This document shows positions 57,103 through 64,000 of a DNA stretch of 64,000 bases, piece after piece. The stretch comes from Vitrella brassicaformis CCMP3155. Lineage: Eukaryota > Protista > Chromerida. The DNA is taken from positions 1 through 64,000 of the forward strand of contig CDMY01000281.1 in the NCBI GenBank assembly GCA_001179505.1, written 5' to 3'. How positions within the stretch are numbered: position 1 is the stretch's first letter; every line of letters begins with the position of its first letter. The notes under the pieces are model-generated. The model saw only the letters and a list, made by a program, of their open reading frames with translations. It was not told where the DNA came from and did no database searches. Both the position numbers and the translations under genes were made by a program.

Positions 57103-59105
57103 ATGAGCACAGGCGCCGTGGAGACCATCATGATGCCCCACAACAGCCCCAAGATCAGCCTCAACGCCACTCTCGACATGCTTCGCTCGCAGAAGCCCTC
57201 CCACCCACCACCTCCACCCTTCTCGGGCAAGGTGATGCCTGTGCCCGGCCTGCAGCCGCACCAGGACGCTTCCACCTCTCCCACACTCTCGGCCAGTCCC
57301 ATGTCGCCCACATCGTCTGTCGAGGTCGACGACAGTGACCAGTACTACAAGACCAAGCCCTGCAAGTACGGGAGGAGGGAGGCGACACATACACACGAGG
57401 GAGGGTGGGACGGTGTGCTGGACTGACTGTTATGTTATGTGGTGTGTTGTGTGTGTTGGGTGTGTTGGGTGGCGTCAGATTTTGGTTGGAGAACCGCTGT
57501 GAGCGTGGAGAGTTTTGCCGTTTTGCGCACACCAACGAGCTGCGGTCTGCTCCCGATTGTAAGCCAAGGCTCTCACGCACAGACACACACAGCCAGACAC
57601 TGGAGCCTTCCCCCGCACCGCCACTCGTGTATGTGTCTCTCTCTGTCTGCGTGTCCATTGCGCTCATTGCTGTGCAGTGAGCAAGACGAAGCTGTGTGCC
57701 GAGTTCATCAAGACGGGCAAGTGTGAGAAGGGAGCCCCATGCAGATTCGCCCACGGACACAAGGTCAGGCAGGTGTCACACACAGACACAGACACTCACG
57801 CCAAGCATGGCTCTCACTGTGCCGGCCTCCCTCTCATGTGTGTGTGTGTGTGTGTGGTCAGGAGTTGCGTGCGACACCTGATTTTTTCAAGACAGCGCTG
57901 TGCATCTTCCACAAGCGGGGCCGTTGCCCCAACGGCTCCAGATGCCGCCACGCACACTCTGTCGACGAACTCAGACCGCGCATCCGGTAACACAGACAGA
58001 CATGAACGAGAAAACACTCTCGCACAGACATCCAAGCCTTTCCGTGTGTGTGCAGTCCGTTCCGCACCAAGATCCCCCGTGATCAGCTGACGTCCCCCAC
58101 AGGCCCCGACACCATTCCAGAGGAGGGGAAGACCCCCAGCGACCCGGCATCCCCAATCCAGTCGCCCCCCCAGCCGCCCAGGATCGAGATCGTCCCTCCC
58201 AAGTCGCCCGTGGTCAACGTGCACTCACCCCCCGTCGACCGCGACACCGTCCTCACGCCCCCCGCACAGGCGGCCGGGCGTCACCTCTGGGTGGGGTCCG
58301 ACCCCTCTCTGCCTCTGCCCATGCTGTCGCCCACATCCGCCGCCCAGGTGCCCCTCAGCCCCACCTTCAGCCAGCCGCCGCAGCAGGCGCCCAACCCGAT
58401 CGACCTGCTCTCGCCCACGTCGACCTACTCGGCCCCGCCGACTCGGGAGGAGCTCATGGCGGGCTATCTGCACGAGGGCATCAACTACTACTCGCTGCAG
58501 CGATCGGGCGGCTTCGGCCTCCCCACAGACATCAACCTGCCCCCGGCGGCCTCGCCGCGCCCGTCGCCCATCCATGTGCCCTTCCTCATCATCCCCGGCA
58601 CCTCACCGAATGCCACCACGGCTGCGGCGGACCAGCAGCCGCTGACGCCCGGGTCGCCCCCCAGCACCGTTGGCTCGGGGTCGGTCGACAAGGGCTACCT
58701 GCTCGAGGCCCTCCAGGCTCACCTCAGCAGGAATCGCGGCACGTCCCCCCAGAGCGTCGGCGGCATGTACCTGAACTCGCCGAGTGCCAATGCCATGACG
58801 TCGTCGCCCTTCGCCTCGCCGCGCCTGACGCCGGATGGGGGCAGCAGCACGTTGCTGTCGCCCCCACTGCAGGCGTCGGGCTTCCTCTCGCCCCGCAGCA
58901 ACCCCGAGATGCCCGCACCGCTGGCCAGGGGGCTCGTGGGGATGGGCAGGTCGCCGTCACACGAAGGTGAGACAGACAGACAGGCAGAAAGGATCGCCAC
59001 ACGAATGCGACACAAAACAATCTCTCTCTCTCTCTGTGTCGGTCAGGACTGTCGTCCATGGCTGCCGAGCTGAAGAAGTCCGCCCCCGACCATTATGAGG
59101 ACTGA
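57103..59105 (+). CDS. Triple CCCH zinc-finger RNA-binding protein (TIS11/ZFP36-like fingers) with Pro/Ser-rich tail
   Basis: YYKTKPCKYFWLENRCERGEFCRFAH, LSKTKLCAEFIKTGKCEKGAPCRFAH, FFKTALCIFHKRGRCPNGSRCRHAH. Last exon GLSSMAAELKKSAPDHYED*. Confidence 0.9.
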
Positions 59106-59148: not shown

Positions 59149-59448
59149 NNNNNNNNNNNNNNNNNNNNNNNNNNNNNNNNNNNNNNNNNNNNNNNNNNNN
59201 NNNNNNNNNNNNNNNNNNNNNNNNNNNNNNNNNNNNNNNNNNNNNNNNNNNNNNNNNNNNNNNNNNNNNNNNNNNNNNNNNNNNNNNNNNNNNNNNNNNN
59301 NNNNNNNNNNNNNNNNNNNNNNNNNNNNNNNNNNNNNNNNNNNNNNNNNNNNNNNNNNNNNNNNNNNNNNNNNNNNNNNNNNNNNNNNNNNNNNNNNNNN
59401 NNNNNNNNNNNNNNNNNNNNNNNNNNNNNNNNNNNNNNNNNNNNNNNN
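59149..59448. other. Assembly gap (300 N)
   Basis: Run of N directly after a G-rich tract downstream of the CCCH stop codon. Confidence 0.99.
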
Positions 59449-61892
59449 GGGTTGTCGGTCACACAACACACACATACGGCCTCTGCTTTGCTGCAAGAAG
59501 GTCGCCTTTTGATCAAGTGAGCTCACTAAGCTGGATTGCGTGTCCTGCCTGCCTATATTGCCTGCCTGGTTGTCTGTCTCTTCTTGAATGAGGGAGGGAG
59601 GGAGGGAGGGGGGCAGGGGGGGAGCGGTTACATCAGTCTCTCTGTCTGTGAAGTGTGTAGTATCTATCTACTTGTGTCCTGCCTGCCTGCCTGCCAGCCA
59701 CACACCCGTGCGCGTGGCCGGCCGACCCAGCCACTCACCGTTTTCGCTGCCCGATTTTTCGCCCGTCGGTCGATCCCTCCATCCATTCATCGGGCAGACA
59801 GCAGAGTGAGTGGCAGACACTGGTTCAGTTCTTTCTTTCTGAGCGTCAATGGCCGTCTCGCGGTGGTGTGCTGTGTTCCGAGGGGTGCGAACGTGATCTC
59901 TTGGAACGAGCACACACACACACGCCTGATGGTGGTGTGTCTGGATGGCTGGCTGCTGTCCGAGGTGGGTGTGGGGGGCATGCGTGTGTGGGTTTGTGGT
60001 GGTGGTGATGGTGTTGGTTGTGTGTCTGTGTGTGGTCATGCTTTGACTGCGGGGGGTTGATGGTGATGGGAGGGGGATGGGGGGTAGATAGGGGGTCCTC
60101 TAGCTAGGTTCTTTGTATCATAGTTCATTGGCCGGTGTGATGGCATGGAGTAAGTGGACACACACACGGGCACACACACATATATATACACATGCGATCT
60201 CGATCACGATCTCATCTATCTCGGTGGGTGCACCATGCAATCCTCCAGTGGACCTTTGAGACGGCGAGACGTCAGCGAATGCACTTCGCTGAATGTCTCT
60301 CCGTCTCTGGCAGCTGCGGAAGGCTTGCTGGGGCACTGCACTGATGAACTGACTGATGAGCCATCTACACAGCATATGGAGCAGATAGACACCACACCCT
60401 TTTAATCTCTTTCTGTCTGTTGGTGGAGGTGGGGCGGGCTGTCTTTCTGATCCCCATCCCCACCACGTGTTAATAGCATGGATGGATGGATGGATGGTTT
60501 GGTCAGGGGGCGGGGCGGAAGGAAAGGAGGCAGGCAGGAATGCGCCACGACGACCAGACCACCAACACGCTGCTGCCTCTGCCTTTTTTCCTTGCCAGCT
60601 GCCTGCCTGACCGACACGTGTTGTAAATAGTTGCTCGCTCGACGGATGGATGGATGGATGGATGCTCCGGACAGACGTGTGCTGCGCCGGGCATGCATAC
60701 GTCAGATCGAACGACGGGAGGGACCATGGTTGTGAGAGTTTTTGTACAGAGAGAGAGAGTCTGCGCCTCTCCCGAGGCTTCCATTCATCGATCGATCTGT
60801 GCCCATAGATAATTCATTCGCTGCATGTGCAGGGGGACGGCGGGGGAGGGGAGGGGAGGGGGGCAAAGGTGAGCCGAGGCGTCTGTGCGTCTCGGGTTTT
60901 TCTCGTCCCCCGCTCGCTCGTGCGGCGGGGGGCTTCATCTCATCCACTCGTCCGTCCACTTACTGTAGCTGACTCACTGACTCACTGACGGGTGGCGTGT
61001 TTATCTGTCTGTCTGTGTGTGTGTGTGAGGGGTGGTGTGTGTGGGGTGGTGTGTGTGGGGTGTCTTCCACTCTGGCCTGGCTGCACGATGCACCTGCTCG
61101 TGGTGTATGCCGCTTGTGGGTGGCAGATAGACTTGCTCTTGACTGGCTAGTGCTGCTTTGGATGGATGGACGGACGGACTGGTGTGTGTGTGTGTGTGTG
61201 TCGGGTGTGTGTGTGGTCGGTGCTGGCCCCGGCCCTTTCTCCCTCCCTTCCTCCCTCCCTCTGTGAGCGGCTCGATCAATGGCGTGGGCTGTTGCAGGGG
61301 AGGGCACAGGGGGGGAGGAACACCGCGGGGGCACTGCGTATTATCGTTGCGTGTGTACTTGTGTGTGTGTACTTGTGTGTGTGTGTTGCATGCCGTGACT
61401 GCCTGCCTGCCTGCCTGGGTGACTTGATCGGACCGTCATCACTACTCGCAATGTTTCTACGCTGCCGTCAATTCATATCTTCTCAAACCACGAAGGGCTG
61501 AACGATTCAGCTTTCCGCTTTGAGCCTGCCGAAACCGAAACTAAGCAATAGTGAACCTTCTACCTATCTCAGTGGCTGTCGGTCTGTCTGTCTGTCGGTC
61601 TGTCCGTCTGCTTGCCGGTTCATACCCCACCCCTCCACCCCCACAGACATGCGCACGCACACGCAGGTTTCCCCTCCCTGTCGAGTCCGTCCGTGTCGCC
61701 CCGATATTGCAACCACAGGTCTGACAGACAGACAGACAGTCACTGCTATCGATTAACAGACAGGCACTGACTGACATCACTGCCTGCCTGGCCGACCGAG
61801 CGAGCGCTCTCCGGTTGGTGTGTCGATAAAAATCACGGTCACAAACTCACTCAGTGGCTGGCTAGCTGCCACAAACTGACTGACGATTTCTA

Positions 61893-64000
61893 TCTATGTC
61901 TGCAGGACGGAGGGGCCCGGCCCGCCGGACCGGCGCTCGCTACAAGCAGACGGGAAGGAGAGCCGAGAGGAGACAGCAGAGATCTTGACATACAGCCAGA
62001 AAGGCAGGCACTTTTCGTGTCTCTGCGTACTCTTACGCCTTGCCCCCCTCTCTCGCCCTCTCTGTCCGCACCTAATCTGCTCTATATCTCCCTCCCTCCC
62101 TCCCCCCAGCGTCACTCACTCCATCTCCGTCACGGTGGCGGGGAAGACGCGTCGATAGGCCGCTCTATAAGCGTTGACGTACTCGTTGTCCTTCGTGGGC
62201 CGCCCCACCACGCTTGCCACCGAGTGCCTCGGCCCCTTCCCGCCCCCTCCCCGGCCGACGACATGAGTCAGCGCCCTCCGCACAGCCGACCCAACCTCCT
62301 CCTCTCTCTCGTGCGACAGCCGCAGGCACCTCTCATAGCCCCCCAGCACCTGCCCGTAGACCCGCGCCACCTCAGCCCAGGTCAGGCCTGCCTGCTGGAA
62401 GGCGCACTTGACGCGAACGTTGCAGGTGTCCTTGAGAGAAGGGTCGGTGGAGGTGGGGAGGTCGTCTGCTGGGAGGGTGAAGGTCGTGTGGTGGGGGAGG
62501 TGGGTCTTGAAGGTGACGAGGCCGCCCCGGACGTCGACGCGCTTGACACAGGGGGAGTGGCGATGGGAGAAGAGGGCAACGAAGTCGGCTCGGGGGGTGT
62601 TGCTCATCAGCCGATAGGTACCCTCCTGATCACATAGAGGGAGGGAGAGGTGCCGCCTCGTGCGGTGTGGTGTGTCTGCGTACCGGTCGTTTGAGTGTGA
62701 TGCGTGCGGTGTGTGCCCGCAGCGTCTCCACCACCCGAAACGCATAGCGATATCGCATCCGATGCCGAGACGACAGACTCCTGACACACACGCACGCACA
62801 CAAAGGCTCGATAGATTGCAGCACGAACAGGAAGGACGGCATTCCCTCTCCTTCATTGGCCCACCCCACCGACCTGAAGTGTATTCTCTGCGGTGCCTGT
62901 GTGGGGTCTGAGGGGTCCTCGATGCGCACAAACAGCCCCCCGGCCTCTATCACATACCGCAGCTCTCTGCTACCCTCCAACACCTGCGCACGAGGGCCCC
63001 TCTCCCTCGAGACGTCGCCATCCGACCGGTCGCCGCTCTCCCCCACCTTCCCTCGATAGGGAAACACGAAGTCGCCCCGCTCGGTCACCTCCATCAGCCC
63101 CCACTTGGTGGTCACCTTCTGGGGCGGAACGTCTCGGGTGTCAAGCAGCTCCTGCAGCATGCCGTCCTCCTCACCCCTCATCGCTGGGGCGGTGGTGGTG
63201 GTGGTGGTGGCAGCGCCGCCCTCCTGGCCACCGCCGACGCCGACACCCCCACCACCGCCACACACCCCGCCGCCCACCGACATGCCCTCGTTGTTGCCGC
63301 CCCGGTCTGACTGCGCCGAGTGCTGGCTGATGCCGTATGCCGGGATGATCGAGTTCATGCTCTGCTCCAGGGACCGGTGCGACATGGCGCAGGACGAGCC
63401 GCACACCGACCCACCTCCTCCCCCGCCCCCCACTTGTTGTGCAGGGGACCCCCCACTGCTCTGAGGGAAAGGCACGGGCGTCGGCAAGGGGAAGAAGGAC
63501 CCACCACCACCCATTATCTGCTGTCTGCGGTGCGAGTGCAGGTCGGTCATGCTCAGCGGCCCTGCGGGGGTCACTCGCTGCGATGGGGCGAGGGAGGGCG
63601 ACTGGCCGGGCGTCGAGAAGCCGTACTGCGCTCCCCCAAACAGGGGATCATATGGCGACGACAGCTGAGGGTGTGCTCGCGCCGGCGTGTTGGAATACGA
63701 CCGCAACACCAGCGACGGCGGGATGGGGGGGCGGGGGAAATCGCCCTGTGACGGCGAGGACCGGGGAGGGAGGTAGGAGGGTGGCGGGTGGCTGCCCGTG
63801 GGGCTGGAGGGGCCGAACGGGCCTGTGAAGGGGATGTGCAGGCCTGCAGCATCCCTCTCAGGGCTCCCCCGCGGCAAAGGTGGCTTGACTTTGACATTGT
63901 GCGGGTCCGCCCTCGCCGTCCAGGGCGACGCAAACCTCTCATCATCAAGCCTCGGCAGCAACGGCGGCGGTTGATGGACATCGGCCTCACCTGCCGTGTC
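61893..64000 (-). CDS. PLK4/SAK-type cryptic polo-box (PB1-PB2) protein, 5' part beyond the window edge
   Basis: KVTTKWGLMEVTERGDF, YVIEAGGLFVRI, SLSSRHRMRYRYAFRVVETLRAHTARITL, YRLMSNTPRADFVALF, GYERCLRL, FPATV align by eye with PLK4 PB1/PB2. The frame is open to position 64000. Confidence 0.72.

Follow-up and report, generated by a model that had tools for sequence, protein, structure and literature searches.

Introduction

The described systems that lie closest to the locus treated here are PLK4, SAK and ZYG-1, kinases of centriole duplication in which two tandem domains, PB1 and PB2, make up the cryptic polo box. It is known that ZYG-1 recruits SAS-6 independently of its own kinase activity (PMC4113102), so that a kinase-independent role of such a protein has precedent. 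Based on a kinase phylogeny, the split between Plk and Plk4 occurred before the last eukaryotic common ancestor (PMC6601020). In a review of apicomplexan basal bodies it was stated that no clear PLK4 or PLK1 homologue exists in apicomplexan genomes, and it was argued from this absence that centriole biogenesis in apicomplexans must be non-canonical (PMC4743101). Within our incomplete coverage of the literature, we found no paper that names the Toxoplasma locus 277560, gives an account of its coccidian orthologues or deals with a PLK4-type polo box in alveolates. Here we analyse a gene at the end of a stretch of 64,000 nucleotides from Vitrella brassicaformis CCMP3155 (contig CDMY01000281.1 of assembly GCA_001179505.1, positions 1 to 64,000 of the forward strand; the whole stretch is called the window in the following). 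The reading that we prefer, to which we give a probability of about 0.7, is that the window holds the 3' end of a gene on the minus strand which has introns and is expressed, that its product ends in tandem polo-box-like domains homologous to PB1 and PB2 of PLK4, and that this module is shared with coccidia.

Results

The last three exons and their product

On the minus strand, positions 64000-62116 form the 3' end of a spliced gene, comprising its last three exons. Exon A (64000-62874) is open to the window edge, with 375 residues inside the window and with a frame that contains no stop from 64000 to 62876. Its upstream part (63149..64000) encodes a Pro/Ser/Gly-rich linker of about 285 residues before the module (P 15%, S 12%, G 16%), which matches no Pfam family, while its end (62874..63148) encodes the PB1-like beta-sheet part, which starts with LLDTRD at 63148 and runs through KWGLMEVT and DFVFPY to RELRYVIEAGGLFVRIED and QRIHF. 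Exon B (62780-62684, 32 full codons) holds the putative basic helix, equivalent to helix alpha-1 of PLK4, and the first PB2 strand; the peptide SLSSRHRMRYRYAFRVVETLRAHTARITL sits in it at 62779-62693, and 11 of its 32 residues are basic (K, R or H). Exon C (62625-62119) encodes the rest of the PB2-like domain, i.e., strands, a long helix containing GYERCLRL and the tail with FPATV, and also contains YRLMSNTPRADFVALF and LMSNTPRADF. The stop codon TGA (62118-62116) lies directly 3' of it. The exons are separated by intron 1 (62873-62781; 93 nucleotides, GT..AG, in frame and stop-free) and intron 2 (62683-62626; 58 nucleotides, GT..AG, with an in-frame TGA), and two long minus-strand open reading frames (ORFs), 62630-63961 and 62116-62931, overlap the gene.

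It is noted that the peptides quoted in an earlier reading of this DNA, made from the sequence alone without database searches (hereafter the sequence-only reading), are all present on the minus strand, in exons B and C, and that its long Pro/Ser/Gly linker is likewise there; the three-exon structure and the two introns went unmentioned in it. It had also reported that no kinase domain is visible in the window, with which the Pfam result agrees: hmmscan of the exon pieces and the unspliced ORFs finds neither a kinase nor any other Pfam domain in the window's part of the gene.

Relatives in coccidia

A metagenome contig from the European Nucleotide Archive (ENA), L001, with a length of 2,534 nucleotides, comes from a close relative and is about 95% identical to the window. 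The protein P0001 of this relative consists of its exon B, read-through intron and exon C, and exon C of the window is 94% identical to it. Exhaustive HMMER search of P0001 against 1.84 billion representative proteins gave a single real relative, NCLIV_068310 of Neospora caninum (E 1e-4). Another candidate, P0002 (953 residues, E 5e-13 against P0001 over 15 stretches), was rejected because it is a translated repeat containing ESNTPRADF many times; it scores only through this motif and is a trap for searches with the polo-box family. A word-based search starting from NCLIV_068310 then added TGVAND_277560 of Toxoplasma, HHA_277560 of Hammondia and BESB_028340 of Besnoitia, and a word-based search with the ORF of 443 residues gave no relative, low-complexity words having dominated it.

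The four coccidian orthologues are annotated as hypothetical proteins of 2,200-2,430 residues. The module lies at their extreme C-terminus in the same order as in the window gene, the tail of exon C aligning with these C-termini and the protein ending about 10 residues past the FP motif, and it is by far the best-conserved part of the four proteins, the identity of their cores to the window pieces being 28-46%. In the alignment of the window's PB1-like part with the four orthologues (A7), T, WGL, EVT, G, F, F and EL..V.E.GG..V are invariant. To judge from these alignments, the module is the conserved core of a family common to the window gene and coccidian apicomplexans. The sequence-only reading had taken a PLK4-like regulator to be lost in parasites, which is wrong for the polo-box module, since the orthologues of Neospora, Toxoplasma, Hammondia and Besnoitia carry it.

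In none of the four orthologues did we find a Pfam kinase domain or any other Pfam domain, an HRD or DFG motif, or a conserved N-terminal block of kinase size. At the Neospora locus (L002; FR823393.1, 6157161-6184342) a PIG-U gene lies upstream on the opposite strand and a gene for a UvrD-type helicase downstream, and no kinase gene adjoins the orthologue.

Profile homology to the PLK4 cryptic polo box

Profile searches were run with HMMER against the 177,635 solved sequences of the PDB. With the profile built from the four coccidian cores and the three exon pieces of the window (A3), the top seven matches are all PLK4 cryptic polo boxes, the best one being human, with E 3.8e-5, 26.8 bits and a bias of 0.0. 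The list comprises the human entries 6W38, 4N9J and 4N7V and the fly entries 4G7N and 4NK7 at E 0.28, and is followed by ADAR2 at E 0.57. PLK4 also stands at the top with the profile of the coccidian sequences only (A10; E 0.033, 17.4 bits), and it stands first with that of the whole C-terminal regions (A2; E 2.2e-4, 23.6 bits), while the PB1-region profile (A7) finds PLK4 cryptic polo boxes only (E 0.014, 18.8 bits). The window pieces add 9.4 bits to the score of the coccidia-only profile, and such a gain on combining two distant lineages is the behaviour expected of true homology.

The matched stretch extends from the last strand of PB1 over helix alpha-1 into the first strands of PB2. Exon B is the stretch that matches PLK4 best, and the start of exon C is also within the match. 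When the window's three pieces are laid end to end against human PLK4, 21 of 64 positions match without any gap (counted by eye in the A3 alignment as printed by HMMER), and this ungapped match is collinear across the exon joints and includes the extra residue in NTP(R)ADF. At the level of profiles, the C-terminal module is on this evidence homologous to the PLK4 cryptic polo box, and the family-level resemblance exceeds chance.

Evidence weighing against the assignment and two rival explanations

Several results weigh against the assignment of the module to PLK4. Firstly, a search of 24,736 Pfam models gives no family at E <= 10, whether with the exon pieces, with the unspliced ORFs or with regions of the coccidian orthologues, and therefore Plk4_PB1 (PF18190), Plk4_PB2 (PF18409) and POLO_box are all unmatched; the check with Plk4_PB1 and Plk4_PB2 models that the sequence-only reading had proposed has thus come out negative. 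Secondly, phmmer searches of the PDB with exon C, P0001 and exon B alone give no PLK4 match, nor does the profile of the PB2 helix and tail (A8), and the N-terminal strands of PB1 add nothing to the PLK4 signal. Since A8 misses PLK4 and these strands contribute nothing, the significant signal is confined to about 65 residues. Thirdly, PB3 is absent, as the stop follows nine codons behind the FP motif and no ORF resembling a polo box lies downstream, and no DSG degron is present in exon A as far as it lies in the window (375 residues). Fourthly, the two AlphaFold2 models, one of P0001 and one of the PB1 piece of the window, both computed from shallow alignments with an intron read through, are unusable (pLDDT, the predicted local distance difference test, 37.4 and 40.8), and Foldseek finds no match to them at E <= 0.001. 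MAFFT had misplaced the helix and tail fragments of the coccidia, and the alignment used for folding therefore does not include them. Finally, a language-model search with the Besnoitia module places the cluster C5orf34-like_N/C5orf34_2nd on top (score 0.90, 170 of 256 features), and neither a Plk4_PB1 nor a Plk4_PB2 cluster is among the matches listed for it. The assignment to a PLK4-type cryptic polo box in the sequence-only reading hence stands as family-profile homology (E 3.8e-5), and it fails as regards the Pfam models and PB3.

Could the resemblance then be a chance match of a basic helix plus a short motif, with the module having a lineage-specific fold unrelated to polo boxes? The shortness of the matched stretch would fit with this, as would the failure of single sequences, of Pfam models and of the PB2-helix profile; moreover, confidence in the structure models is low, and weak PH-domain matches came up for the PB1 model. 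It is against such a coincidence that the E-value of 3.8e-5 comes with zero composition bias, that all seven top matches (7/7) are PLK4, from two species, and that combining two distant lineages strengthens the signal. In addition, the secondary structure predicted in the low-pLDDT models shows strands followed by a helix, twice, and an independent method, the language-model search, points to polo boxes, the clusters found with the Besnoitia module being of polo boxes only (C5orf34-like, POLO_box and Polo_box_4). The PB2 model gives about 12 entries of PLK4, Cdc5 and PB3 among its weak Foldseek matches at E 1-2, which are not evidence on their own. Taking these together, we consider a chance match very improbable.

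The language-model search gave no usable match with P0001. Its result with the Besnoitia module supports the polo-box fold class and at the same time raises the C5orf34-like group as a rival home. It could be argued that the module belongs to this group of kinase-less proteins with multiple polo boxes, and that PLK4 is matched only since it is the nearest solved structure. This would be consistent with C5orf34-type clusters being first and fifth in the search (the fifth, C5orf34_C/Polo_box_4, with 173 features), with the Plk4_PB1/PB2 clusters being unlisted, and with the coccidian members being kinase-less. However, the tool itself describes scores near 0.9 as no more than leads, and recognition is low here, at 1175. 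Furthermore, the Pfam models of the C5orf34 group and Polo_box_4 are unmatched at E <= 10, the architecture is different, the boxes here being a single pair at the C-terminus behind a very long stretch of disorder, and the sequence match to PLK4 spans the junction of PB1, helix and PB2 without a gap. We therefore regard membership in this group as unlikely.

Splicing, expression and selective constraint

The evidence shows a genuine gene that is spliced and expressed and evolves under purifying selection. In a public RNA-like run (X1, record 7) intron 2 is spliced out, with 62683/62684 joined directly to 62624/62625 and 58 nucleotides skipped. The fit of this contig ends at 62784, just inside the acceptor of intron 1; 13 letters beyond that point are loose, and the four letters fitted last (tcag) are also the end of exon A. 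The comparison with L001, which aligns with the linker from 63686 downstream with indels of 3n nucleotides only, separates exons from introns: the exon indels are all multiples of three (9/9), whereas those in the introns and the 3' flank have lengths of 1, 12, 4, 7, 4, 14, 4, 5 and 4 nucleotides (1, 12 and 4 in intron 1; 7 and 4 in intron 2), and the identity is 96-97% in the exons and 82-91% in the introns and flank, with 82% in intron 1. The ratio of non-synonymous to synonymous substitution rates (dN/dS) against L001 is 0.20 overall, and exon B shows 3 synonymous and 0 non-synonymous changes. Also consistent with the gene model is that in the alignment the coccidian proteins are gapped exactly over both introns, including the 31 codons of intron 1.

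Upstream, a possible further in-frame intron (GT..AG, 168 nucleotides) lies at 63990-63823 on the minus strand, with the donor CAG|GTGAGG at 63991/63990 and the acceptor CAG at 63823. In the run X3, 8 of 9 listed substitutions cluster at 63818-63922, i.e., within about 105 bases, and the run is identical over 61500-63774; the cluster would be compatible with the intron at 63990-63823 or else with a divergent allele. It is noted that this run bears a different organism label. Within the linker, a (CCA)n/(GGT)n tract at 63180-63262 encodes the runs of Gly and Thr; the contigs of all runs break there, and L001 differs from the window by a 21-nucleotide indel at the tract.

Is there a kinase upstream?

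Scans of metagenomes found no longer contig that reaches upstream of the window edge, and no further relatives. It may be proposed that the module is the tail of a complete PLK4 orthologue, with an active polo-family kinase a few kilobases upstream, beyond the window, that triggers centriole duplication as in animals, the coccidian proteins being a derived kinase-less offshoot. Two features expected under this proposal are seen, a reading frame that stays open up to the window edge and, as in PLK4, a long disordered linker in front of the module; in addition, the window module lies nearer to PLK4 than those of the coccidia do, as the gain of 9.4 bits indicates. By contrast, PB3 is absent and the DSG degron is not found in the linker inside the window, all four known relatives are without a kinase, and none is seen in the part of the gene within the window. 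We thus consider a complete PLK4 orthologue possible, with the odds against it.

Other features of the window near the gene

Downstream of the gene, short dispersed repeats of high copy number and rich in CAGA/GACA are present at 61572-61611, 61722-61743 and 62087-62104, to which hundreds of contigs from every run align, with depths in the thousands and many false joints. A run of N, i.e., an assembly gap, at about 59150-59450 lies between the downstream region of the gene and the next genes, and the ORFs across it are runs of X. On the plus strand, the ORF 57677-58090 starts with a motif like that of a CCCH zinc finger (C..F..G.C..G..C.F.H), and after it comes a Pro/Ser-rich ORF at 58048-59073.

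Discussion

Based on analogy with PLK4, the following mechanism can be proposed for the module. The tandem polo-box-like domains would pair two copies of the protein, and the helix linking PB1 to PB2, which is strongly basic, would let it dock to the acidic segment of a receptor at the centriole or centrosome. This docking may then bring an N-terminal cargo to the site of centriole or basal-body assembly. The fold, the dimerisation, the docking partner and the centriolar localisation are each what the PLK4 system would lead one to expect of such a module, rather than features observed here.

A more specific proposal, which we put forward tentatively, is that the family is a remnant of PLK4 kept in chromerid-type algae and coccidia. 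According to it, the cryptic polo box would have been kept by selection as a kinase-independent scaffold, with a pseudokinase in the free-living relative and with the kinase gone in Toxoplasma and its kin. If this proposal is true, apicomplexans would not be wholly without the PLK4 pathway, and locus 277560 would be a handle on centrosome duplication. The module would also offer a natural case in which a cryptic polo box functions in the absence of its kinase.

Returning to the preferred reading, namely, that a spliced and expressed gene ends in a module homologous to PB1 and PB2 of PLK4 and shared with coccidia, the presence of a docking module of the PLK4 type both in a chromerid-like genome and in four coccidia would provide the question of the apicomplexan centriole with a concrete candidate gene, which can be tagged and depleted. 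The finding is also relevant to the question whether PLK4 is older than the animal-fungal lineage, as the kinase phylogeny suggests (PMC6601020).

Finally, we compare the module with the known systems. With the PLK1-type polo-box domain (PF00659) the same general fold class is expected; this Pfam family gives no match, and PLK1 polo-box chains, although numerous in the PDB, are absent from the matches of the family profiles. The C5orf34-like proteins (PF15025, PF22833, PF22834 Polo_box_4 and PF15016) resemble the present family in having polo-box-like domains and, in its coccidian members, in lacking a kinase. Their boxes, however, occupy most of a protein some 600 residues long, whereas here a C-terminal pair follows a long linker, and none of the four Pfam families matches the window pieces or the coccidian regions at E <= 10. 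From PLK4/SAK/ZYG-1 (solved in 4N9J, 4N7V, 4N7Z, 6W38, 4G7N and 4NK7) the window gene differs in that PB3 is missing, the coccidian proteins also ending at that point, in that its linker inside the window shows no DSG degron, in that the coccidian relatives have no kinase and the window's part of the gene has none, in that the module carries additional loops, within PB1 and also between the helix of PB2 and the tail with FP, and in that it is unrecognised by Plk4_PB1 and Plk4_PB2 of Pfam. What it has in common with PLK4 are the motifs RY.YA..V..R...ITL and LM.N.P.ADF, the two predicted tandem units of strands and then a helix, the long disordered linker before them and the putative basic helix that links them. 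Compared with the coccidian proteins, the window gene has the one-residue insertion in NTP(R)ADF that they are without, and they have long low-complexity inserts within both boxes that it does not have; the module itself, the order of its parts, its C-terminal placement and the end of the protein shortly after the FP motif are common to the window gene and the four coccidian proteins.
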